37,259 nucleotides of DNA from Pelomyxa schiedti (taxonomy: Eukaryota; Protista; Evosea): assembly GCA_020536535.1 (NCBI GenBank), contig JAHLWZ010000514.1, positions 1 to 37,259 on the forward strand. Direction: 5' to 3'. A program made the position numbers and the translations under genes. Positions 4,511 through 33,430 of this stretch are shown one piece after another; position 1 is the stretch's first letter, and the number at the start of each line of letters is the position of its first letter. Below the pieces are notes generated by a model that saw only the letters and a list, made by a program, of their open reading frames with translations, made no database searches and had not been told where the DNA came from.

Positions 4511-7062
4511 TTAGTACCTGGGCCTTTTTGATGATGGTGGAGTTGGCGTTGCTGTTTGTATTCTCCAGCCTGGAAGCTTCTCTGGTGTTTTCCTTTGTTG
4601 TGCCGAGTCGGTTCTGTACCTGGGCCTTTTGCTACTGAGGCTCCTCATTTGGGGTTCCGGCTCGTGCAGAGTTGCGCTCCTTCTGCTGTTCTCGAACGAA
4701 TGCAGTGTGGCACCAATGTCAGCGCTTACAGTCTGCTGAAGCTGCTGGTTGAATTTGGCTTGTCTGGGAGTCTCCTCCATGCTGTGGCTGTGCAGAACCC
4801 GGTTGAGAAGCGGCCCCCGCGGCATTTCAAACTCGTGGTGCTGGATGTTGCACTTGGCCCACTTGAGGTAAGAGGTCAGCATGGATTCCCCGAGGTGCCG
4901 TAATTTGCTGGATTCCAGGAACAGAACGCCGAGGGCTTCCTTCAGGCTCTTTTGCGATGACAGCTGCGGCGGAAGCGGAAGTTGTTGCGCATGAAGCTTG
5001 TGCTCTTTCATCATCACCTCGAATCTGCGCTGAGTTCAGTGGAACGGAAAAGGGAAGTGAATGCGGAATGTTTACCGGTGCTCATGCGGAAGTATGAATA
5101 GCATTGTGTGGGCCGGCTTCAATTGTCCATCACTGCCAATTCTGCCCTTCGTGTTCTTACATCGGTGGCTGTATGTGGCAGCATCATCCGGCAGGTCATA
5201 TTGCACAACCCAGTCCACTGGTGGGTAGCAAGAGAGGTCGCTGCCAACCTCTTCATCATCGTCCCCTGCGTTGCTCTCCAAAATGGTTTGTCTTGCTTCG
5301 CGGATTGTTGCGGCATTAATAACATCTGTTGTAAACAAAATTCCACACCTTGCGGCACAGAACTCTGTATAAGTTTGTTTGCGGGCAAGAGGTTTCATTT
5401 GTTTGTGCAACTTCCACAAGGCAAATGATTGTGGTAAGAATGACCTACAAAAAGGTGTTAAGGGTAACCACTTTTTAAGTAGGCCAACCTAAAAATGATA
5501 GAATAAAATTCCACTTCAGCACAGACAGCAAATATTACAATCACCTTCGCATCAGCACCAGCGCGTTTTAGCAACAATAGAAGTAAGTCCATTCGTGCCT
5601 CATAATGGATGCGAACATAGTGATGAGTCAGCATCAACAGCCCAGTAGGACTTGTACTGGCAACAGTTTTCAATGGGGCAGCAGTGGGCACGCTGGGTTT
5701 GGTTTTGCTGTCAGTGGAAGGTGGAGTGGCAGAATCCAACGAAATATGACCGCGTTCACCTGGTTTCGCCTCGGCATTGAAAAAAATCGGGTCCTTTGCA
5801 AGCATACTCATGACCGCCAATACTTTTGGTTTCACGTACTTGGTGGAGATTATTGTTAAGCGGCGCCAACCAACGCCGGCAACGCCATCACCAATGCTTT
5901 CAGATACCTTCCTGGAAAACTGCTGATAGAACTGTTGTTCTAAGGCCTTCGTCTTGAATAAAACTTCCTGAGCGTCATCTAACACGAGACATGCAACGCA
6001 CTGTGGTGAGAGTACGTGAACCACAAGGTTGTTGTTTAGATCGGTGCTTGTCAGTAGCCCCGCGTGATAAAGTAGTCTCTCCAAACTTGCAACAATCACC
6101 CACACATTTCTGGATTGCTTTAGCGCAGCCCTCTCTACTACATCCATCTTGGCAGAGTATAATGTAAGTACTCTTGGTGGCTCTTCATCAGTACTGCCCG
6201 GATCACATTCGGTCTTGTGATACCGAAGTAGTTTCCTGGCGATTTCCGCAATCCGTAGAACTTGCCTAGCAGGAGCAACAATAACGGAACACACTGGCAA
6301 CCCGTCTTGATCCTCTGGCCCTTCTTTCTTAGCAGCATCGGTGGCGTTTTCCACTCGCCGCAGTTGCTGCAGGATCCGCACTTTCCGCACTGATTCCACC
6401 GCAGGTATGAGATATGCCAGAGTTTTCCCACAGAGGGCGCCGGACATGAAAACGTCTTGAGTCTTGTTCTTCCCATTGCCACCATCCGGCGGCTGGCTTA
6501 CAGCCAGAGCCGCTCGTATTGCTGCGTACTGCATCGGAGTCATTGCGTCATAGTTCAGAACCCGCTCCAGAGACTGCAGCGTGGCCTTGGAAACCGGGAG
6601 TGAGCTAAACAGCCCAGAGTGTGCCGGCTCCTGGTCACCCACGCTATTCACAGAAGCCTTGCCACCGCCAACAACTTCCTTCCGTTTCTTCTCTTTCTCC
6701 TTCTGCTTTTTCCTCTTGTTCTTGGCCGCGTTTTTGCCCGCTGGTTTCGGCGAAGCCCCGGCGTCGGTGCCTCGGCCTCGTCCGCCATCTGAAGCCACGG
6801 TTCCTCCGTTTTCGGGTTCGGGCGTTGTTTTCTCCTCCACGATTCCTGGTGGCGTTTCATCCTCAGCCCTCGCAGGCGAACTTTGTGATCGTTTTTCAGG
6901 GGGCAGGTCCGGTTGTTGTTGCAATTGTGGGAATTGCGTGCGTTGGGTTGTAGTACAACCGTTTGGTTTTTGGACCGTTGCGGTAATGTGTTGATTCGCG
7001 TCCACGGCCCCCCGGGACGCGCGTGTAATAGTTGTACTCATCGTCGGCCGGCGGCGTCGCAT
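4511..7062 (-). CDS. HAS1/DDX18-like DEAD-box protein with degenerate catalytic motifs (probable pseudo-helicase), 3 exons
   Basis: Q-motif region FSSLPVSKATLQSLE..MTPMQ, then GKTLAYLIPAVE, KVIVIF..C..VEFY, TEFCAARCGILFTTDV and VDWVVQYDLPDD..YSHR match the Has1 pattern. Two short introns near 5445-5488 and 5026-5075 join ORFs 5458..7167, 5072..5419 and 4511..5017. Start is ATG 7062 or 7041. Confidence 0.85.
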
Positions 7063-7366
7063 CGCCGTGTTTTTAATTCTATCTACGGTGTGCAACTGTG
7101 AAAAAAAGGAGGGTCGAAGGGCTTCGGGAAGCGTCTCCGTTCCCCATGAACTGTCCACCCACAGCAAACTGTTGTCAACAAGCTAGTCCAGGGTGGTCAC
7201 ATTGGGACCACCCAGGGAACCAAGTTGGAATCCTTGATGTTAGGTGAAAACGAGGTTTTTTTCAAAAAACAAACAACTGCCGCACGCGACGAATCGTAGT
7301 AGAGTAAAGAAAGTAGTAGTAGCAGCAACAGCAATAAAACAAACAAGGCCCACCAGATAGCAAGAG

Positions 7367-10371: not shown

Positions 10372-12833
10372 TTACTCCGCCTTGAGCTGTTCATAGATGT
10401 AGCGCACAAATATTAAACTGCTGGAGAAGCCCACAGTGCCGAGCATAAGGAAGAATCCGAAACAGGCAAGGAAGGTGTAGCCAAAAAAGTAGGAGCCCTG
10501 GAGAATGCCACTCATGGCAGAGCGGGCACTGTAGTAGTACCAGCTGTTTCCTTGTTAGTTAAGACAAACAAAGGAGTGGGACAAAACCTGTAAGCAAAGA
10601 CAAAGAAACTGGCGGACCTACATATGTTTAGGTAATGGGAAATCAACTTTGGAAGGGTGCATACCCTCCACACAGGAAAGACTTCCACCACCAGCGATGA
10701 TCTTCCAGAGATAGTTGGAAGTAGGTAACGGCGGTGGTGATAGAGGCAGTGACAACAATAAGTATAATGAACACGAGGAACAAAATGCCGTAGAGACTGT
10801 AATAGCTGTGGCCCCAAAGAGCTTCAAAGATGTAAAACATCTCTATGTAGATGGCACTGGCGCATGTTAGTGAAAGTAGGCCTTGGATGATGAACCAAAT
10901 TTACACCTGAAAGGAAGAAATCCGGCAGCAGCCATCTGGAAGGGTAGAGTTCGGTACCACGGCGTTGGTGGGATTTCTCTAACTGCATTTGCTGTACGGC
11001 AAGGAGCATAAAACGAGCCTGGGTTGAAATGTGAGGGGAAATATTGTTTGAGTGCTACAGCGAACCAGTAGTGCGTCTTCCAATAATTCCACCAATTAGA
11101 TACAGTGGTACTCCAACAATTACGTGAATCATCAGAACCTCAACGATAGTCCAGAATGGGATGGACATTGTTGAGCCTTTAGCTGCTGCAATTGTATTGA
11201 CCCACTGAACAAACAGGGTTAGGGGCTTATATGAGAGCACAACTTACGAAGAAGATCAGCCCAAAAGGAATCGCAAAGAGCGTTGCAGTAAGAATAATCG
11301 TCCATGACCACTTCACACCACCCATTTGTTGGAATAAACGGGCTGCAAAGAAGCCTCCAATCCCTGTATCATACGTTATGTGCTGTGAGAAAAAGAGGTA
11401 CTATACCAGAAGACAAGGCATACAAAACTATAGCAGATGTATACACAGCTCCACCCATTTCAGGATGGAAGAGACCTGAAAGAGGTAAGTAATACATGCA
11501 GAAAACCTTGGGTACCTGTAAGAGACAGTAAAATAACCCCCAAGGCAGTCGCAAAGAACTGGCAACCAAGACCATAAAAGGCACAAAAGAGTGTTTTTGA
11601 CGATGGGAAACGGAAGACGTCATGGTGCACAAGTTTCCAGCCGTAATCCTCGTCCGGGGTCTTGGAAGCTTTGAAGCAAAGCTAAGATAATTTCGGGAAA
11701 ACACAAAAGAATACATACCGCCTTCACGAGACTTACTCGTTGAGGACTCATAGCGATTAAAATCGTTCTTTAGGATTCTCATCACAATAATAGCTAAAAA
11801 CCTAACGCAAAGTGAACTTCAGAGGAAGGGGAGAAACGGAAGGGGAAAAACCCTGTAAGGAGAACAACAAGTACGAGGGAGTTCATGATTGACAGCCAAT
11901 GAATTTCCATTTCTTTTCCAAAGAATGTGTCCTTGTAAAGGTCGTACCTAACCCCATTAACATCAAGCAGTAAGAAGCATAGATGTACCTGTGGTGATAC
12001 GGGAACGAAGTATTGCTCCAGGTTACAGAGTATGTAAAATTAAAATCAAGAAGAGTTCCCTCCGTGAGTTCAACAACTCGGTCAGTGTACGAGCTTATGT
12101 TCACTTGAATGATCTGAGGAGTAATGAGATGAGGAAATATTCGCAACGATACTCAACTCGGTTCCTGTTCTTGGAAATCGAGAAGTCCATATGTGTGAAC
12201 AAGTAAGTACGCTTGTATGGACCTTCAGGAGGGTCTTCAAACCCAATAAAACCGTGAACAGGTAAATCCTCTTGGGAAAAGTAAGTGCTAGAAATGAAAG
12301 GGAGAACTCACCTATCAGCATTTCATAGTAATATTGGTTGGAAATTGCATGTTTAAACGAAGCGACATTTTGTTCCGTGAGTTTGCGATGGCAAAGAACA
12401 ACGTTATTGGCCTCAACACCAAACCTAAGGATATACACGTGAGCCAGAAAGTAAAAAGAAGCATACTGCGGAAACCGTACTCTATCTTGTACATTGCAGC
12501 CCTAATTGGTCTGTCTCCTTGCAGTCTCTGTGAGAGAGTTGTGCTTTTCCTGATGTGTGAATCCGGAACACAAAACGGCATAGCCCACATCCTATACACC
12601 TATGTTTTTTGTTAACAAAAAACCAAAAAACCAAACAAAAAAAAAAAAACACAAAACCACAACGTTACGCTTTTCCCCCTACACATACATACCTCCATAG
12701 GATTGTTATAAGGCCCGATGGTGTTGAAAAAAACGGGGACTGGGTCGCCGGTATTGTAGCGGCCCCCGCACGACACACCCGAGATCCACACGCACGCACA
12801 CACGACCGCTATCGCCAACACCCCTCCCTTCAT
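10372..12833 (-). CDS. Transmembrane 9 superfamily (nonaspanin/EMP70) protein, TM9SF1-like
   Basis: Signal peptide followed by [22 protein letters not shown]; YYYEMLI; [14 protein letters not shown]; NDFNRYE; [15 protein letters not shown]; [17 protein letters not shown]; and a C-terminal [22 protein letters not shown]. Many short GT-AG introns. Confidence 0.95.
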
Positions 12834-16593: not shown

Positions 16594-19500
16594 TCACCGG
16601 TTACTGCGCGGTTTTCTTGGTGCACTGCTTTCTGGGTTTCTTCTTGCTGGATTTGTAACGTTGTTGCTGGTGTTAGTATTGACTGAATTGTTGTTGGGGT
16701 GGTGTGTTGTAGTTGTTGTGGTAGTTGTTGTTGTGGTAATGATGGGCTTTGTGGCGTTTGGATTGGTTGTTGTTGTGCTGCTGTGGGTGCGGTGGATCAT
16801 CACGGTGGGTTGGTGCGGTGTGGAGGTGAAGCCGCCGCCGGCGCCGCCGGGGGGGTGCCGGGATGAGGGCGGCTTGTAGTACGATTGCTGCGGTTGAAGA
16901 GAGCGCATTTGTTGGTGGTATCCCCAGTTGTCGAGCGTCGACACAGGGCCTTGGGAGTGGGTGAAAGGAGAAAGTAAGCAAGCGTGAGAAAAAAGGAATA
17001 TGCGGAGTACCTCCAAGGCTGTACAAATAAGATTGCGGCGGTGCAGTTGTTGCTTGCGGAGATGCAGGATTTTGTTGTTGTTGTTGTTGTTGTTGCAGAA
17101 GGGTGTTTTTGTTGTTGTTGCTGCTGTTGTTGGAAGTGTCTGGATTGCTGGACTCTGTTGTGGGGTGACTCTGCACAGCCGGTGGCGGTGCTGGAATGGA
17201 GAAAGCACTGACCCAAAAGTAGAAATTCTGAACCACTCCATTCCTGCCAAGCATTAGCACATAATAATAATAATAATAATATGTGAGTGAGTGGAGGTCA
17301 TGTTCACTGAGGAAAGTGTGGATGTGAGTAAGGAAGGAAGGAAGGAAACCTGAAAGCCAACAGGTCCGGATCAGGGTGAAGTATTCTCTTCAAAATAGAG
17401 GTTGAGCTGAGTGCCGTTGCACTGGTCAATGGAGGTGGAACCCCCGACGAGGCAATAGTCTCAGTTGTTAATAAAGTGGGTGTGGGCGTGGGTGCGAGAG
17501 TGGGTGTTGTGGTGGTGGTGGATTTTGCCTGGGAACCGTCGGTTACAGGAGATTTATCATCAGCAGCAGCCAAAGATACGGTGCTTCTCTCAGGCTGGGG
17601 TGCATTGGGGGTGGGTTTGGTTTCATGAGCACAGAGGCGGTGATACGTTTGCGCGAACACACCCCTGATATGGATTGTGCTGTAAGACATTCTACCAACA
17701 TCATTTTCTAGTATGTGTGCGGTGCACATAAGCATCGCATAGAAGAGATCGAAGAACAACAAACCGGGATCGTTGGGGTCTTCAACACACAATAGAAATG
17801 GATTATTTGGACGAACCCAGCCACGTGCTCCCTGTTGATCATGTGAGTGAAAAGAGTGCAAGGAGGAGAGTTGTTTTTCTCTTCACTTTATCAAATATAG
17901 ATCCATTGTCGCGAACAGATATCCCTTGAGCCAGCGTGAGATGTATTCCGTAAAGGTAAAAAAGAAGGGTACCATGCTTAAAGTAGTCAAATGTAATGCC
18001 ATAAAAATAAAAGAACTCCAGTAAAACTTGACCCAAATTGGGGGCCACGAAAGGTTCCTCTGCTGGGTGTTGTTGGTTGGCAGTAGAAGCCTCTGGTGGT
18101 TGATTTTCGTGCAGTGCATCGGGAGAAGAAGGGATTTGCACTACTAGTTGTAACTTGGTAAGGGCTTCAATTCAAAAGGGCAGTTGTAAAATTTACGTTT
18201 GATGGGGAAAACCTGGTGATTCGTGAATCTTTGGCTGTTTGTGTTGCTAAATAACCCGTTAACAGTCCATATGCACCGAAAAGGGTACACACCAAAAGAA
18301 TATAGACCATCATCAAAGTGAGGGCATAGGAGCCAATACCACCTTTGTGGGTCTCACTCAAGTGTTGCTGATGCAAAAAATATTTCAGGAAAAGCACAAG
18401 TGGTCTGAGGTAGGGCATTTTCTTCACAAAACCCATGATAACCCTTGTGTTGTTAGGACCTTGTGCGGTTAGACTGGTAAGACGAGGGGGAACCGTACCG
18501 GCATTGACATTGCAACAGATGTCCACTGTTAGTCCCGAAATCCTGTCTTTCATCTTGATGATTGGAACCTTTTTCTTCGGTTAGATAACTTAGTATGGAT
18601 TTGAGAAAATACCTTCGCATTTGGGAATACTGAGATGTCAGCAAAAAACAACCTTGCCTGTTGTTGATACAAAAAAGCAGCCAGTTGTTGAAGGTATTGT
18701 ATTGCATGGATGTTACCCTCCGACTCAATATACACGGCAATGTCCACATCCGCAAATGGTAAGAACAGTGAAGTAACAGAGGACCCATATACTTCAATCT
18801 ATGGGTTGGATTGGTTTTTTGTTTTTTTCAACTCTGTTTGTCCTGAGAGAACTGGAATTATTACCTTTGCGGTGGACCATATCTGATTTACAATCGTTTT
18901 GATACGAGAAATTAGTTCCTCACGAAGAGTTTTCTCTTCAGTGAAAGGCTCTGTGTGTAGGGAATTACAAATAGTTACAGAAGAAAGTAAAAAACAAACA
19001 AACCCATAAACTTCTCGAATAATAATATTTCATCATGTAACCTGTAATTTAATTCATGGAATTAGTTCTCTCATAGAAGTCAATGAAAAGAGGCAGCAAC
19101 TCACGTTATTTCCTGAGAATGTCTTGTTGGAGGTTGCATCCAAGGCGGTTCACTTCCCCCTCCGAACCACCCACTCCCAGAAGACATGGGGCCCAGCACG
19201 GGGCTGTATGCACCCGTGTTAACGTACATGTGATAATGAAGCTTTTGAGAAGGATGTGAATGAGGCCGTTGCTGATGAGAGGTTTGTGCATCGTTTTCAG
19301 TATCTGTGCCCCTCGTGTCAATTTCTTCCATTGGACTATTTGAAGTGGTTGAATACACTGTGTGGCCGGGAACGAGTCTTTGGTTAGGACCACTGGGGTG
19401 TCTTTGATACTGTTGTGCATGATAGCTGTTGCTTCCACCATAAAATGTGGCACTAGTTTCCCCGAAACCCCGTCTGCTATAATGAACACTGACACTGACT

Positions 19501-20835
19501 CTATCTCCAGTATTCAAAGTAACGGCACTCTCTGCTGGTGCAGCAATAGCTTCACCACTTGGAGTACTCTGGGCCAGTTCTGCACTGGTGTGAGTACCAG
19601 CATCAATGCTCGTTGGAGTTGCAGGCATTTGTTGTGTAACACCCGGTTGGGTTGGTTGCACAGCAAGCGGTGCGCCTTCCTTCTCGAGAGATACAGCTAA
19701 TGGTGCAGGGCAGTCCAGTTTGCTGGAATTTTGTTGTTGGAGCAAACTGTTTGAGGGTGGGGGTTGGGCTTGTGGTGACTTTTCTTTTTGTATTTCATTG
19801 TGGTGCTGCTGAGAAAGAGAGCCAAGTATTTCACCACTGGCCAATATGGGTGGGGTACTTGCGCTGGGTGTATGGAGTAAAATGGGAGGAGATGGACACG
19901 GGGAATTTATGGGGGATGCAAGCGGTGATGTGGGAGGCATATTTTGAGTTGGAGAAAATGAGGTTGTGGTTTGTGACTTTGCTGCACGAGGTGATAAGAT
20001 ATTTTGTGAGTTTGTTAAGGTATGAAGGGACAGGGAATTTGGAGGGGAGTTGAGAGGGGAGTTCGTAGGAGGTGAATTCAGGGAGAAAGAGTTCGGCGGT
20101 GAATTGATTGGCGGGGAATTAACTGGCGGAGAAGACCGCCTCTGTGGAGAGGGTATATTAATTCTTTGGGAACGTGGTGATCCCGTTGTCTTTGAAGCTG
20201 GGGATGGTGGGGATTTAGGATGCGTGTGGTGATCCAAGTGGGGATGTGGCATATGTGGGACTTGTGCAGGGGAACTTGGTTGTTGTGGATGTGGTTCATC
20301 CTTGGTTCTGTCCCAGTTAGAATCACCCACTGGCGCTTGGAAACGCGGACTATTCTTCTTGGAGGGTGAATTCTGAGCGGGAGATGTCGGTGGTGTGACG
20401 AGAGGCACGGAAGGAGAGTTGCCAGAGCCGGACTTGGAGTGAGAGTTCGTGCGGTGCCTAGGGGGTGCAGACTGAAGATCGTGAGGGTCATGTGACGTAA
20501 CCGTTATGGGAGAGGAGGGTGCAGAGTGCGATTCAGAGAGCGTGTGCAGAGAAGTCTTTTTAGGCATGCAAAAATACAAACTGGCCTGCGATTCACGTGA
20601 GCAACCGGGACTCGAATTGATTGGTGAATACGTGGTGTGAGGGCATGCCGATATTATGCGGAGGAAAAACGACGCTTACTTCGACAAGGCGAACTCGGAT
20701 CTGCGGCTGTTGTACGCAAAGATCGCCCAACAAAACCACCCTTCTCCCTGCTTCTGTTTGACTTGCTGTGGTCGCCCGCACACGTGCGTGTTGTTGATTG
20801 ACCTTTAAAAAAGAGAATGATTCGTTCAATTGCAT
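16594..20835 (-). CDS. Non-canonical poly(A) polymerase, TRF4/PAPD5/TENT4-like, with long low-complexity N- and C-terminal extensions
   Basis: Nucleotidyltransferase signature IEVYGSSVTSLFLPFADVDIAV, third Asp in VDIC, LRPLVLFLKYFLHQQHLSETHKGGIGSYALTLM, NLGQVLLEFFYFYG, and PAP-associated LCVEDPNDP..NDVGRMSY. The 5' end is inferred via an intron at about 20587-20678. Confidence 0.9.
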
Positions 20836-25258: not shown

Positions 25259-26470
25259 CTACCAAATGTCAATGAATCCAAGTGACCTTTGCAGGAGTTC
25301 TAGTCTGAGGATGGCTATCACAGACCCAGTGGTTGGGTCTGTCACTTGGACATATTTGCCCAGTCCACTTGGTGGACTGCTGACCTTACATATCAGGCCA
25401 TTGGACAGCACCCTGATGCTGTTGAAGTCCGTGTTGTAATGAACAAAGCACGGTGCCGTCAGATTCCCGATGTGGAACACCTGGCAAGTGGAGGTGTTGC
25501 TGCAGGGAATCACGCAGAAGTGAGCATCATCCACATGTATCATCTGCTTCACATCCTGCAGCTCAGTGACATTCCCAGTGTTGGCGCAAACAAGGGCGAA
25601 CCTCTTCCTCCCAGACAAAAACACAGGGGCATACACAAGCCCGTTGTATGACATGAGGCCACCAACAGCAGAAGGGCTGGAAGCCATTGTCCACTCATGT
25701 GACTTGTGCATCACAAACTCACCACTCTCATATGACCTTCTAAGGTCCATGTGCAAAAGTGACCACCGCGATCCAGAAGTCTTCCTGAGGAAAGTGGCTT
25801 CGTTGAAATCGCCGAGGATCATTGGGCACAGTCCCTTGGTCATTGCGACCTTCTCAACGGTCAATTCGTGGAACGGCAGGATGACGTCACGCGGAGCAAC
25901 TGGGCAGCGGTTTTCCAGCGACCAGATCGTGACTTTGCCTTGGGCGACTGACGCCATCCAGGAGCAATTGCAGAGGACGAGGGGGTCGCAGTAGGCCTTG
26001 ACGTCAACAGCAACCGTGGCCAGTGCGCGGTCGTTGTCAAAGTCCCTCGTCGTGAACTCCTTCCCGAGGACTGTGACGACCGTCGAGCTGTCGAGGCACG
26101 CCCACAGCTGCTGCTTGAGCACGACGCGGGACTGCACGACCGCCATTGTGGGACTGAGGCAGAACCTCACGTTGCCAGTGACCCCCGACGCGGACGTGAA
26201 GTTCACGGCGACGGCGCGGTCGCGCGGGGTGACCCACCGGTGGGACACGTCGCGCAGGACCGAGGCCGGCATGTGCCTGGCGGGGCTGGCGGCGCCGCAG
26301 CGGGGCAGCAGCGCGGCGCCGAGGGCGAGGATCACAGCCGCGGGGCTCAGGGACCACTCGATGTCCGCGACGTCGTCCGCCACGAACGTGACGAAGTACG
26401 TGCCGCGATCTCCTCCTCCGCCGCCTCCTTCGCCTTTACGCTCGGGGAGAGCGGACCACTGTCGGCTCAT
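25259..26470 (-). CDS. Intronless hypothetical protein, likely a member of an expanded lineage-specific family
   Basis: Single ORF of about 403 aa from ATG 26470, with strong GC3 bias in its 5' half. N-terminal motif LALGAALLPRCGAASPAR is followed by beta-rich sequence. Confidence 0.75.
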   Translation of the reverse strand: MSRQWSALPERKGEGGGGGGDRGTYFVTFVADDVADIEWSLSPAAVILALGAALLPRCGAASPARHMPASVLRDVSHRWVTPRDRAVAVNFTSASGVTGNVRFCLSPTMAVVQSRVVLKQQLWACLDSSTVVTVLGKEFTTRDFDNDRALATVAVDVKAYCDPLVLCNCSWMASVAQGKVTIWSLENRCPVAPRDVILPFHELTVEKVAMTKGLCPMILGDFNEATFLRKTSGSRWSLLHMDLRRSYESGEFVMHKSHEWTMASSPSAVGGLMSYNGLVYAPVFLSGRKRFALVCANTGNVTELQDVKQMIHVDDAHFCVIPCSNTSTCQVFHIGNLTAPCFVHYNTDFNSIRVLSNGLICKVSSPPSGLGKYVQVTDPTTGSVIAILRLELLQRSLGFIDIW

Positions 26471-26708
26471 TTCGTTCGTTTTTTCGTCACTTCGCAAATG
26501 AGCTGGTTTTCCCCGAACCCACAGTGTGATCTTCTGCGGAGGCTCTCTCCTCTTCAGAGAGCAGGATGCATTCGTAAATTGTGACAGTGCTTCGATTGGT
26601 TGCATGCAACCAATCATTTGGATGTTCCCTCCCTGATCCCCTGAAAACACAGTGTCTGATTTGATGGCTTCTGTTAACTGGAAAACAAAAGGCGACTGAT
26701 CGTAAGGA

Positions 26709-27794: not shown

Positions 27795-29336
27795 ATGCCG
27801 GGGTGTCGTATATGGTCGTTTTACATCCTCGCGTTGTTCACACTAGGTACTATTCACCAGCCCATAATAATACCCAACCTCCCCCGATACGGCACGTCGC
27901 CCTGAAAGCGTGCCGTTTGTTGGTTTTTTTTTTTTTTAATCCTTTTTTTTCTTGTTGTTCATTTGCCTCGGAAGGGAGTTGTGGACAGGACTCGCCGTTT
28001 GAGGCGTGGTGTACTGTTGATCACCCGGACGGGACGTCGTTCGACCATGCGTACCCTGTCACATTGGGATTCTACGGCCAGTCTCGCACAAAGGATACGT
28101 CGTCTTTGATTCATGAGTGCGTTCTTTCTTTCTTGTAATAAATTGTGTTAACTACTTAATTTTGTTATATTGTAGAAGTTATGTGACAGTAAATGCTATT
28201 ATCCTGGTTTTTTTTTTTTTTTTTTGAACCGCCACAAGGGAAATTGTGACAAGCTTATATACAGCTTACCCTCGACCCTCAGCTGTATTCCATGCTGGGG
28301 GAATGGTCGAGGGTGATGGGTCCTCCTCCTGGCAATCATTTTTCCAAATGATATCGCCTCTTTGCAGTGCCATCCCCATGTACTTTGTTCATGGTTCGTT
28401 CTTTCCTTTTCGAAAATAAGAATCTCTAATCTCGCCCCAGGTGGTGAAAGCACTGACGCCTTCACTTTTAACACAAAGTCCTCTCCAACATACTGGGTTC
28501 AGTTTGGCGGGGTTAGAGTGACTGTCTTGGACACTACTGAAGTTAATGCGGATCAAACTGCCTTCTTGACTGGTGTTCTTTCCAACACGACGGGAGTGGA
28601 CTGGGTACCGGCTTTCAGCACTTTGACATACCACTAATATTCCTCAGGATATTGCTATGTTATATAAGCCAAGATTCAGCACATCCCACGGTGGCTGTGG
28701 GTTCCTGGACTCGGACTTCGAGAAAGCCCTTTCAGATGCGGATTTAGTCATTCAAGGGTACTTCGCTTTACTCTCTTAACTCGCATGGCTAATATTAGTG
28801 CAGACGCGATGCAAACTATGAAAGAGCCTTCCCTATGCTGGGACCTCATTGGATTTCTACTGGTGGTGCAGCCCCGGTTGACGACTTAGAGTACCAGTTT
28901 TGGACAAATACTTGGTCCGCTTCATTCAAGACAGTGAACCACTTCTTGACACTGCAAGCAACGGCGGTTTTTGCACCCTTGTACTACAAGCCTAGTCTTT
29001 CTCACACTACTACAGACCTCTCTAACTGTGAAAGCAATCAACCCCCTCAATGGTACCATTGTGTATGACACTCTGTCAGTAATCAAGGGGCAACCCTTCA
29101 ACTGGTACGGCAGGCACGGCGATTATGATGTGTACTGTCAATCCGGATCCTGGTATGAAACAAGGGAATTCACAGCCCCAAACAAACAGTAAAATCACAA
29201 ACAAACCCCTAACAACAAATGCAACTGCAGGTGGCATGTTCCCGTTGGAATTGCTGTGGTTGTGGGGCTATCTGTGGGCTTCATCCTCTGCCCAATAGCC
29301 GCTACTTTATTCTGCCGCAAAATCAAGTCCGTTTGA
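27795..29336 (+). CDS. Type I membrane protein with a purple-acid-phosphatase-like (calcineurin-like metallophosphoesterase) ectodomain lacking metal ligands
   Basis: Signal peptide MPGCRIWSFYILALFTL. Spliced segments LGFYGQSRT, AVFHAGGMVE, WQSFFQMISPLCSAIPMYFVHGGE, VRVTVLDT..QTAFL, IAMLYKPRFS, ADLVIQGRDANYER and PHWISTGGAA follow the order and spacing of the MPP motifs. C-terminal TM helix VPVGIAVVVGLSVGFILCPIAATLF, then RKIKSV-stop. Confidence 0.75.
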
Positions 29337-29544
29337 AGTGTTTATTCAACTCTGAGGAACAGACCCAGCTGGTCCAGACCAGAAAGAAAAATAGAAAACT
29401 TTTCTAATTTAATTTAATCTGTCGAATACTTTTTTTTGATTGGCATTGGTCCCCGGCACATCACCCACTCAAACGAAGTTCTTGTCTTCGAGTAAAACAT
29501 CATTTTTCTTCAAAAAATACCAAGCAACGCTTGGTTGATTGACG

Positions 29545-30942
29545 ATGATGACGACGCAACAAGACAATACAAGCGACACATCGTGTTTGGAGGGGACTGC
29601 CCAGCCGGCAGTTGTACCACAGCAGACGCATCCGTCAGTAACGGTTGCGCCGATGACCCCTCCAAAGACCATATTTTCCGTGGACTCTGCAGAATTTACC
29701 CCGTTTAGAATGAAGCCCACTTCACCTTCTTGCACTTTCCGCGTCGACGCACCAGAGTTCTCTCCATCTGGGGACTTCTGTAAGAAAAGCTCCAAGACCT
29801 CTGGTTCTCCGCCGAACAGTGCCTCAACCACTACCGTAGCATCACCTCAAACTACACCATTGGTCCTTTCACGCACTGCTGACCCTCCACCCACCATAAC
29901 CATCGAAAAACCGGCAGTACAAGACTCCACCCCCACCCCAGATGAGAGCCAAGAGGCTCATAATGTGACCAACTCGGGACATCCTTCATTCAACGTTCCT
30001 GTGACGTCAAACGCACCAACAACTCCAACACGCAACCAGCCCCTTCTTGTCGCCGCTCGCTCTCTTAATGTCGAGAACGCCCCTTCACCATCGGCCGCGG
30101 TAGCAGTCACACAAACATCCACTTCGCCAAAAAGCCCTGGATTGTCACCCAATGACCGTCTCTTCAAACATCCCCTGGAACATCGATGGGTCATGTGGTA
30201 CGACAACTCACAGCGGAAGGAGATCAACCAGCAAAATTGGGGAGAGGGATTGAAAAGTCTACTGGATTTTGGCTATGTGGAAGATTTTTGGGGGTGAGTC
30301 TTTCACTTTTACACTTCCGTTCTTATTTTTCTGATTGCAATACATAAAGGATGTACAACAACCTGTATCCCCCAGGAGCCCTTCCGGTTGGCTCCAATTA
30401 CCATTTGTTCAAGGCAGGCATTGAACCCAAGTGGGAGGATCCAGCCAACACAGGAGGTGGGAAATGGATTGTGAATGTGGCAAAGAGACCGGACACCGCG
30501 GCGCTCAGCTTAGATTCATTGTGGTTAGAAACTGTATATAAGGCTATCTCCACTTTATACCCCTAATGGTTCCATGCAGATTCTCGCTTGTATTGGCGAA
30601 CAGTTTGATGATGGCTCCGACATGATATGCGGTGCCGTTGTTAGCACCCGAAAGCAGCTGGATAGGATAGGTAAGTCCCGCTCTTAGAACCTCATTTTTT
30701 TGAGTAACCTTCCTGAAGCTCTTTGGACAAAGGAGGACCGGTCTGGAGTGGAAATGATAAGAAAGATTGGGTGCGTGCTGCTTGGCCCATAAGACCTTAA
30801 TTTTACTTACACTCTCCACAGGCAAACTCTGAAATCCAAGCTTGGACTTCCGGCAAGCATGGTTATCAGTTACGGCACTCACACAGATGCCAGAGCCTCC
30901 AACAGCAGCTACTTTCGCCTTCATTCAAATTTGGAACTTTGA
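29545..30942 (+). CDS. eIF4E: Cap-binding translation initiation factor eIF4E (class I-type Trp pattern) with a ~205-aa N-terminal extension
   Basis: KHPLEHRWVMWYD..NWGEGL..VEDFWG|MYNNL..SNYHLFKAGIEPKWEDPANTGGGKW..LWLET|ILACIGEQF..ICGAVVSTRKQLDRI|ALWT. All eight conserved Trp positions are present. Confidence 0.96.
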
Positions 30943-30998: not shown

Positions 30999-33430
30999 TT
31001 ATTTATTTTGGCAGAAAAGGAACCGTTCTCTGATGGCAAGACCAAATTTAAAAGTGGGCCCAAAGATAACAACATTTGATGCGAAAGTGACGAAAGGGTT
31101 TGTGCGGTCGTACTTGCGGGTGTCGTTGTTTGAACGGCGAAACGAACTTATGGGGGCCACAAAAAAATGCACCACATCTTTACCATGTAACGTAGTTGAC
31201 ACCCGCATTACGACTCCGGCATAATTAATAATTAACAACCTTGAAAAATAACTTCAGTCATAACAGCACCACTGCGGACTCTTCGAAGAAAGCATTGAGG
31301 TGTAGGAATATGAGTCCTCTTTCTCTTCCTCTTCCACCTTCATTCGTTGTCAGCAGTGTCAAGAAGCAAGTAAGAGGGTGGTAATAGTTAACTTCCTCGC
31401 TTATTGTGCCAAGGTAATGTCTTTCCTTGCGTCACCTGTGGCCTTAAAGCCAGAATTGGATGCTATATTTCCCGGCCACCTCTACCAGAAAGAAAACGTT
31501 GAGAGTGATACTTGACAGCAGCAGAGCGGTGGCCAAACAAACGCACCCAAGGTGTAAATCCCTTTGTAATTTCCTTATATTGACTGATAATGTTGGAAAA
31601 ACTTTTGTTTGCAGGCTAAAAAGGGACATGCGGCGGTGGCAACACCCCCACAGTGTATACGACATGGCCAAACTGTGTCGTGTCATTGATTTGGATGTGG
31701 TCTTTATACAAATCTGTGGAAAGGATTAGACAGAGAAAGAGAGATTTGTAAATCACATGTCCGAATGCTTTTTGATTTATATATGTCGCTAGGCATAGGA
31801 GCAAGACTCAAGGCTATTTGCAAGTCTTTAACAAGCTCACAGATACACACTGCTCTTGTATTGTAAGTAATATCTGTTGATCCAAAATGGGCTGCCCTAG
31901 GCCTTTGAGGTAGGTGAGAATCCTGTTGGCGACCTTTTCGTCCAGCGTCCACTGCAGCTGAGCCGGCTTGTCTTGATGAAAAAGAAAAAACATAGGAAGA
32001 CAGAGGAAAACCTGACCCTCCAGGATCCCTTGGCCAATGTTAGAACGTGGGGAGATCGGCAACAATCTTTGAGTTGGTTGAAGATTCCTTTTTTGTTGTG
32101 TAACAGCGAGGAGCCTTGGAAGTGGCAACTCCAATAAAACGCGAAGTTCCTGTAGGTAGTTGATTAGTCTCCCCCCCCAGGAAGTTGAGGAGACTTACTC
32201 CAGTGTGGCTCTGGATCGAGTCCATCACGTCACAGTGGTCGATGTCAAAGCAGACGTACGGGGGACGCTCAAGGTAGGTGTGTGCACAGTCGAAGAATTC
32301 TACCTGTGAGATTGATGATGAGGCACAGTACGAAAACAAACAAAAAAAAACCAACGTACGATGGGCAGGAAAGCGACGGCACCAAGAACTCCTCTCGCGA
32401 GCACATCGACGCCATTCGGCGAAACGCACACCGTCACACGAGAGACGTGCTTCAGTGCACAAACACCTCTGCGTAGACGTAAAAAACAAAAAAAAAACCC
32501 GGCAGCCGAACCTCTCAATTTTTCCTTGCTGTACTCCGGTACTATGGCTTGTAGCAACATCAGTCCCTTTATATAGATAGAGCTTTCGACACCACACTCC
32601 AGCAAACGTACGATAATTGCACTCGAACTCTGGACACGCTGTTTGAGTTGGTAAACTGCTCACCGCAAATTTCAGCTGCATCACAGGGACAAGTTGAGAA
32701 ACAGAAATAATGGCTCCTCGGATTCTATGGAATCAATATAAATGAAACCACGAATTGTCAGGTGCTCTCTATGCTGTATTGTACCATATGAATTACAAAC
32801 AACGTTATACTAATTAATCACAAGAAAACAACAAGTTCAGTAAAACGTACACTAGGTTACACGGCATGTACAAGATACGTTTCCCGTATCGCATGCAGGT
32901 CCAATCTACCTCAATGCTGGTATGCCTGCCATTTTCATCTGACTACGCCACAATAAAACTGACTTTTTGAAGTTCTTTAAAGAACTACAAAGTAGTACTC
33001 ACCGCCGATGGCCTCCAGGAGACAACAACAAACAAAGTATTGTTCCAAGGCAGCTCGCACCGCAGGAAACAAGGTCGGTCCTCCAGGACGTTTTACCCCT
33101 CATTGAACCTGGTTTCTCTTGTATAAAAAAATTCAAAACAGGCTTTACTCAAATTCAAAGTTTCTGTGTTCTCTTTACTTGTTTTCCTTGCGTGGTTACT
33201 GTAAGCTCATGATGCTGGTTTTTGTGGATATACATGGAAAACGTGAATGCAGTGGTGGATGGTGGTAACAGGAATGAATTCATTCATCGAGTAAAAAAGA
33301 CATCCAGTGAGTCAAACCAATCCTCAACATTATTTGTCACCTTTTCAATAAATCCCCTCGGGCTAGGTTGGTTGTGCAAAGAAATGTCTTCTGATGATGG
33401 TCGTCCTCCTTTGTTAAGTCATAAATACTA
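30999..33430 (-). pseudogene. Multi-exon hypothetical gene copy carrying a frameshifting 224-bp deletion (5' end uncertain)
   Basis: Exons can be spliced, e.g. GVCALKHVSRV..FLPI|VEFFDCAHTYLERPPYVCFDID..|ELRVLLEL..|PAQLQWTLDEKVANRILTYLKGL. Relative to the copy at 36647-37259, sequence is missing at 31835/31836, giving SVSLLKTCK-stop. Confidence 0.55.

Follow-up and report, generated by a model that had tools for sequence, protein, structure and literature searches.

The window that we analysed, a 37,259-nt stretch of DNA from Pelomyxa schiedti, a free-living anaerobic amoeba (Archamoebae, Amoebozoa), carries on its + strand a gene for the translation initiation factor eIF4E (29545..30942, +). 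The gene is composed of five exons (29545-30293, 30350-30533, 30580-30670, 30719-30770 and 30822-30942, all on the + strand, with the stop codon TGA at 30940-30942), which splice into an in-frame CDS of 1197 nt encoding a product of 398 aa. This product has two parts: an N-terminal extension, rich in Ser, Thr and Pro and predicted to be disordered (29545..30159, +; aa 1-205), and the eIF4E core (30160..30942, +; aa 206-398), whose coding sequence is split by four GT..AG introns, 56, 46, 48 and 51 nt long. All four junctions were found spliced as modelled in RNA contigs from a single-cell RNA run (X1), which together cover the gene from 29936 to 30906. Neither this run nor a second search of runs provided RNA contigs over 29545-29935, a segment that includes the motif region described below; this is a gap in cover and does not contradict the gene model. 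The nearest database protein is P0001, the annotated eIF4E of Pelomyxa schiedti (362 aa), with 97% identity over the part compared and only seven substitutions from M37 onward. Since the DNA runs of the same study as X1 hold both haplotypes, the 3% of differences between the window and P0001 are allelic. The contig that encodes P0001 (assembly GCA_020536535.1, 1725 nt) begins 20 nt upstream of the M37 codon, so that the annotated start at M37 is an effect of truncation.

Several further observations were made around the gene. In run X2, one haplotype carries a 6-nt insertion (TGAGGG) behind 29539 together with a T>A change at 29546, which turns the first ATG into AAG and would move the start to the second ATG, at 29548. 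In contigs of runs X2-X4, whose type is unrecorded and which are probably DNA, a 51-nt stretch at 31161-31213 is skipped; its ends, AA..CG, are not intron-like, and it resembles an indel polymorphism, located 3' of the eIF4E gene. The frame of the upstream gene ends with a TGA at 29334-29336, about 210 nt before the eIF4E start codon, and the 3' end of that gene is covered at higher depth by an RNA contig (29230-29362). A Pfam search of the ten largest ORFs in the window (among them 5458-7167, 19101-20579 and 25259-26650, all on the - strand) gave no match at E<=0.001, and no RRM or PABP gene was found nearby.

The assignment of the host protein to eIF4E, made in the preliminary description of this DNA, was corroborated by profile and alignment evidence. 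The Pfam family IF4E (PF01652) matched exons 1, 2 and 3 at consecutive profile positions 1-37, 39-94 and 95-124, with E-values of 6.6e-6, 1.8e-17 and 2.9e-7 respectively, and P0001 also carries PF01652. In an alignment of 46 eIF4Es (A1), the invariant and near-invariant residues are all kept, including the HPL motif, eight Trp, the WE pair and an Arg. In the numbering of P0001 the kept residues, at columns that are invariant or at least 90% conserved in this alignment, are H173, P174, L175, W179, W182, W196, V209, E210, W213, W242, E243, W253, W272, R299 and W308. Among them are the Trp pair that stacks on the cap, with its neighbouring Glu, and the HPL...W dorsal site for eIF4G and 4E-BP. The class-defining Trp is present at both positions, which we take to correspond to human W43 and W56. 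The best PDB matches are to canonical eIF4E (E ~1e-46), with Leishmania eIF4E-1 reaching only 3.6e-21, and the closest relatives of the core are amoebozoan and opisthokont (fungal and animal) eIF4Es, not the kinetoplastid proteins. Judged by its sequence, the protein is a canonical class I cap-binding eIF4E, and a class I core should still bind eIF4G or 4E-BP-type partners. Class I eIF4Es from elsewhere (human and mouse, Balamuthia) are 41-53% identical in the core to the Pelomyxa protein and have the same invariant cap-binding and eIF4G/4E-BP-binding residues; what differs is the extension, which comprises 205 aa in Pelomyxa and 0-170 aa in these relatives.

As had been described, the extension is rich in Ser, Thr and Pro (31 Thr, 31 Pro and 29 Ser in aa 1-205) and contains many SP/TP sites, 14 in total. 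Its aromatic residues are strongly clustered, with six of the seven lying within aa 44-78. AlphaFold2, run on P0001 with the 46-sequence alignment, predicted residues 1-168 as coil with a pLDDT of about 50, as opposed to values above 90 for the core. Two PAM2-like motifs sit in this predicted disordered region, and PAM2 motifs generally lie in disordered regions (PMC6379680). Motif 1, TIFSVDSAEFTPF, is encoded at 29668..29706 (+; aa 42-54) and its core, FSVDSAEFTP, at 29674-29703 (+; aa 44-53). Motif 2, CTFRVDAPEFSPS, is encoded at 29731..29769 (+; aa 63-75) and its core, FRVDAPEFSP, at 29737-29766 (+; aa 65-74). Both peptides had been noted before, and both are present on the + strand in the frame that continues into the eIF4E core; the spacing from F44 to F65 is 21 residues, and the end previously given for the pair, 29766, is the last base of Pro74. 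The form common to the two motifs is F-x-V-D-[A/S]-x-E-F-[S/T]-P.

Crystal structures define PAM2 by a position 3 that is hydrophobic (mostly Leu, with Phe or Pro in some cases) and a position 5 occupied by Pro or Val, more rarely by Thr (PMC2854688), together with an invariant Ala at position 7, an invariant Phe at position 10, a Pro at position 12 and a preference for Glu at position 9 (PMC2854688, PMC7356810). At position 4 Asn (or Ser) is usual and stabilises a beta-turn, its side chain contacting a Glu of the MLLE domain (PMC2854688), and at position 7 a side chain bulkier than Ala is sterically unfavourable (PMC2854688, PMC7356810). Position 3 is hydrophobic in both Pelomyxa motifs (Phe44 and Phe65, Phe being a permitted minority residue) and position 5 is satisfied in both (Val46 and Val67). 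So are Glu 9, Phe 10 and Pro 12, positions 9-12 reading E50-F51-T52-P53 in motif 1 and E71-F72-S73-P74 in motif 2, which also places an S/T-Pro site at positions 11-12 of each motif (T52-P53 and S73-P74). The two motifs part at position 7, where motif 2 has Ala69 and motif 1 has Ser48, the sole failure of motif 1. At position 4, Ser45 of motif 1 is acceptable and motif 2 has Arg66 in place of the usual Asn or Ser; Arg66 might also contact the Glu of MLLE, as the usual side chain at this position does. Motif 2 is therefore, by a regular-expression search, a full match to the structural definition (positions 3, 5, 7, 10 and 12, and the preferred Glu 9), in agreement with the earlier judgement that the second motif fits better and that the first has Ser at the Ala position.

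We compared the two copies with each other. They share six of ten core residues (positions 3, 5, 6, 9, 10 and 12) as against only one of 11 flanking residues, and five of the six shared residues are encoded by different codons, the nucleotide identity of the 21-residue units being 27/63. Because the identity falls on PAM2-defining positions and is written in different codons, the likeness is maintained at the protein level and is not the trace of a recent DNA duplication. Conservation of this kind argues for function without naming a particular partner, so that short linear motifs which bind something other than PABP have to be considered, be it a UBR5/HYD-type HECT ligase with an MLLE domain or an unrelated domain. 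MLLE domains do occur outside PABP, and the D-A-P-E stretch of motif 2 recalls the core of the FFAT motif (EFFDAxE), a VAP ligand. When the FFAT motif is aligned on D-A-P-E, however, its essential Phe position is occupied by Arg66 in motif 2 or by Ser45 in motif 1, and the acidic tract expected upstream is absent; the FFAT/VAP reading was rejected for these reasons. Moreover, the conserved positions 3, 5, 9, 10 and 12 are precisely those that contact the MLLE domain of PABP in crystal structures (PMC2854688). We regard functional motifs with a partner other than PABP as quite improbable.

The extension has left few traces in other sequences. A word-indexed homologue search with the extension returned only the P. 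schiedti eIF4E itself, and an exhaustive search of 1.84 billion representative proteins gave no match to aa 1-82. A few matches begin before aa 143, namely P0124 (from aa 123), P0134 (aa 96-157), P0153 (from aa 129) and P0250 (from aa 83), and these look like low-complexity matches; the remaining matches cover the core plus only the approximately 60 residues that precede it. The representative library did not return P0001, and extension-bearing members may thus hide behind representatives that lack an extension. A feature search of the ESM Atlas with aa 36-85 gave no usable match. Within the species, the alleles give a pN/pS of about 0.37 for aa 97-205, and over aa 37-205 nonsynonymous changes between the alleles are below the neutral expectation (p=0.01). 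In the motif segment (aa 37-96) there are no nonsynonymous and two synonymous changes, a comparison with the rest that has no power (Fisher p=0.48), and the sole change in motif 2 is synonymous (P70, CCA>CCC).

Other members of the family in P. schiedti were also found. Two further annotated eIF4E paralogues in NCBI, P0287 (300 aa, with HKL replacing HPL) and P0311 (282 aa), have 46-47% core identity, and their extensions, about 110 residues long and rich in S/T/P/A, lack both aromatic residues and PAM2-like motifs. P. schiedti thus has an expanded eIF4E family, in which a single known member bears the motifs. A closer paralogue, 79% identical, is present as an intronless RNA contig (L002:3-1046; Logan, SRR23919876) whose frame is open to the 5' end. 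It has a Thr/Pro-rich extension of at least 155 residues, its homology to the window gene begins only 12 residues before the core, and beyond those 12 residues the extension is unalignable and holds no motif in the known 155 residues. Its PTVDIVRHSP stretch could, speculatively, be a decayed motif copy. Loose ends at 30185-30222 of the window, in runs X2 and X4, touch this same paralogue.

Could the two motifs be a chance resemblance? The extension would then be a fast-evolving, low-complexity tail with some other role (solubility, phase behaviour or the phosphoregulation of eIF4E, for example) or with none, and it would make no contact with PABP. The properties of the extension give this reading some substance: outside the motifs it changes fast between alleles, and between paralogues beyond alignability, and the S/T/P/A-rich, motif-free extensions of the other P. 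schiedti paralogues indicate that such tails arise readily. The scan with Pfam PF07145 (PAM2) that had been proposed in the preliminary description gave no match at E<=10 with motif pieces of 24 aa and 45 aa, a weak negative for 12-residue motifs since most faint matches are dropped by the HMMER filters, and phmmer found nothing for the motif region among PDB chains, again with a tool that is weak at this length. These negative results weigh against PABP docking, as do the departure of each motif from the canonical form at one structural position (Ser at Ala 7 in motif 1, Arg at 4 in motif 2) and an extension with no detectable homologue, unalignable even to that of the closest paralogue. In the six-frame translation of the window one other full match to the PAM2 regular expression was seen, at 10607 on the - strand; it is probably outside any real reading frame, and its occurrence nonetheless lends some weight to chance.

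Composition accounts poorly for the pair. When the extension was shuffled, a full structural PAM2 match occurred in 0.68% of trials, and a full match accompanied by a near match in 0.01% (1e-4). With a score requiring five of the six consensus positions, two hits occurred in 0.0025% of trials (2.5e-5). These figures are to be read with the look-elsewhere effect that remains, the motifs having been picked from a scan of very many genes. The motifs exceed what composition yields by chance, and a scan of this size can be expected to match some translation proteins by chance. Among 336 eIF4E-family proteins including the Pelomyxa one (64,182 residues), the extensions of the 335 others, 164 of which have at least 40 aa before the core, contained no PAM2-like motif. 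Two matches 21 residues apart, an identity between the copies confined to PAM2-defining positions and encoded by different codons, and a host protein that acts at the mRNA 5' end, a place where a ligand of PABP is functionally reasonable and has been found before (PMC6379680, PMC11754739), all speak against a chance resemblance. Taken together, we consider chance, along with the alternative roles just mentioned, a real possibility and still an unlikely one.

The motifs would be irrelevant if they were absent from the mature protein, either because translation starts downstream of them or because the extension is a mis-annotated 5' leader. The lack of RNA contigs over 29545-29935 leaves room for this, and so does the public annotation beginning at M37, although the latter merely reflects a contig that starts 20 nt before that codon. 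The reading frame itself points the other way. M1 is preceded at 9 nt by an in-frame TGA, after which the frame stays open for 252 codons. Within 29400-29941, all frames considered, there is no ATG apart from M1, M2, M37 and M56, which are all in frame. After M56 the frame has no further ATG until M217, located inside the core, past the HPL motif and behind five out-of-frame ATGs. Since the RNA contigs extend back to 29936, 224 nt ahead of the core, and there is no in-frame ATG between M56 and M217, initiation should take place at or before M56. A start at M1, M2 or M37 keeps both motifs and a start at M56 keeps motif 2. The departure of the alleles from neutrality over aa 37-205 and the cDNA contig of the 79%-identical paralogue, which likewise reads through 155 or more open codons of extension into its core, are also difficult to reconcile with an untranslated leader. 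A start at M217 was rejected, given its place within the core, the five ATGs ahead of it and the reach of the RNA, and the concern raised at the outset that the true start might lie downstream of the motifs is thus largely excluded for motif 2. That the mature protein lacks the motifs appears very improbable.

The explanation that we favour, with a confidence only somewhat above even, is a class I eIF4E with a disordered tail whose PAM2-type motifs would, by analogy with known ligands, dock on the MLLE domain of PABP, and we lean to the same slight degree towards at least motif 2 being a working PABP ligand. In the usual closed-loop model it is eIF4G that joins cap-bound eIF4E to tail-bound PABP. 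We hypothesise that a class I eIF4E acquired a disordered N-terminal extension of 205 residues with two PAM2-type peptides that may bind the MLLE domain directly. Going by solved PAM2-MLLE complexes, the Phe at position 3 (Phe65 and Phe44) and the Phe at position 10 (Phe72 and Phe51) would fill two hydrophobic pockets, Val 5 and Ala 7 would pack on the MLLE surface, and a conserved Phe would serve as stacking partner of Pro 12. Motif 2 would probably be the main site, while motif 1, with Ser for Ala 7, would probably be weaker and add avidity or a second PABP contact. PABPs that end in a PABC/MLLE domain are described as the rule among eukaryotes, and such a PABP is inferred for the last common ancestor. 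On the model of trypanosomatid EIF4E3 and EIF4E4, cap and poly(A) would be linked directly through eIF4E and PABP, in addition to the eIF4G-PABP contact or in partial bypass of it. Proline-directed phosphorylation could switch binding off, as the S/T-Pro site of each motif, at positions 11-12, adjoins the key Phe. Such a switch is plausible because phosphorylation near PAM2 motifs is reported to lower PABP binding, in a reference cited in PMC6379680 and PMC11754739.

The closest known parallel is found in Leishmania and Trypanosoma, where the PABP MLLE domain is bound by EIF4E4 and EIF4E3 through two to three PAM2 motifs in their long N-terminal extension (PMC6379680, PMC11754739). Of these trypanosomatid proteins, EIF4E4 was the exception named in the preliminary description, and the literature bears it out: PAM2 motifs in an eIF4E are reported only for trypanosomatid eIF4E3/4, the one reported exception to the eIF4G-bridged closed loop (PMC11754739, 2024). 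Motif 2 of the Pelomyxa protein resembles the validated PAM2 of Leishmania eIF4E4, MNPNATEFMP, which binds with a Kd of 33 nM and is weakened most by E146A and F147A (PMC6379680). The likeness extends to the architecture, in which the core follows a disordered, SP/TP-rich extension that exceeds 150 residues and has at least two PAM2-type motifs, and to the family, as both lineages have several eIF4E paralogues with the motifs in only some. On the other hand, the extensions have no sequence similarity, the Pelomyxa core is class I and only distantly matches Leishmania eIF4E-1, the lineages are separate (Amoebozoa and Discoba), and the motifs have a different flavour, F-x-V-D in Pelomyxa and M/L-N-P-N in trypanosomatids. 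Binding to PABP has been demonstrated by experiment for the trypanosomatid proteins and is putative for the Pelomyxa motifs. The Pelomyxa eIF4E may work like the EIF4E3/EIF4E4 group, of which it is not a member.

The canonical PAM2 ligands of the MLLE domain of PABP, with the consensus LNxxAxEFxP (PF07145), include Paip1, Paip2, eRF3, ataxin-2, PAN3 and Tob (PMC7356810, PMC2854688). With these the Pelomyxa motifs share a hydrophobic residue at position 3, Val at position 5 (as in eRF3), Ala 7 (in motif 2), Glu 9, Phe 10 and Pro 12, as well as their setting in a disordered region of a protein of mRNA metabolism. They differ in having Phe instead of Leu at position 3, Arg at position 4 (motif 2) and Ser at position 7 (motif 1). 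Two motifs are found in eRF3 as well, overlapping there and separate in Pelomyxa.

With an extension that has no detectable homologue and a core nearest to amoebozoan and opisthokont eIF4E, not to kinetoplastid eIF4E, any PAM2 present here would have arisen independently. The preliminary description had proposed an eIF4E-PABP closed loop that evolved on its own in this lineage, and the analysis supported it in part, through the class I core, the predicted disordered and SP/TP-rich extension, the agreement of motif 2 with the structural definition and the independent origin of any PAM2. A PF07145 match did not appear. Whether two PABP-docking PAM2 motifs evolved de novo here, a second independent origin of the cap-to-poly(A) bridge with a possible phosphorylation on/off switch, seems to us an evenly balanced question. 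Overall, the sequence makes the Pelomyxa eIF4E a credible though unproven analogue, of independent origin, of the trypanosomatid EIF4E3/4 proteins.

The direct eIF4E-PABP case of the trypanosomatids has been tied to their unusual cap4 and trans-spliced mRNAs. If the bridge proposed here is true, an unrelated lineage with an ordinary class I eIF4E would show that direct coupling between eIF4E and PABP evolves readily, and the Pelomyxa protein would offer a natural test of how far the closed loop depends on eIF4G. It would also be a clean case of short linear motifs born de novo in a fast-evolving disordered tail.
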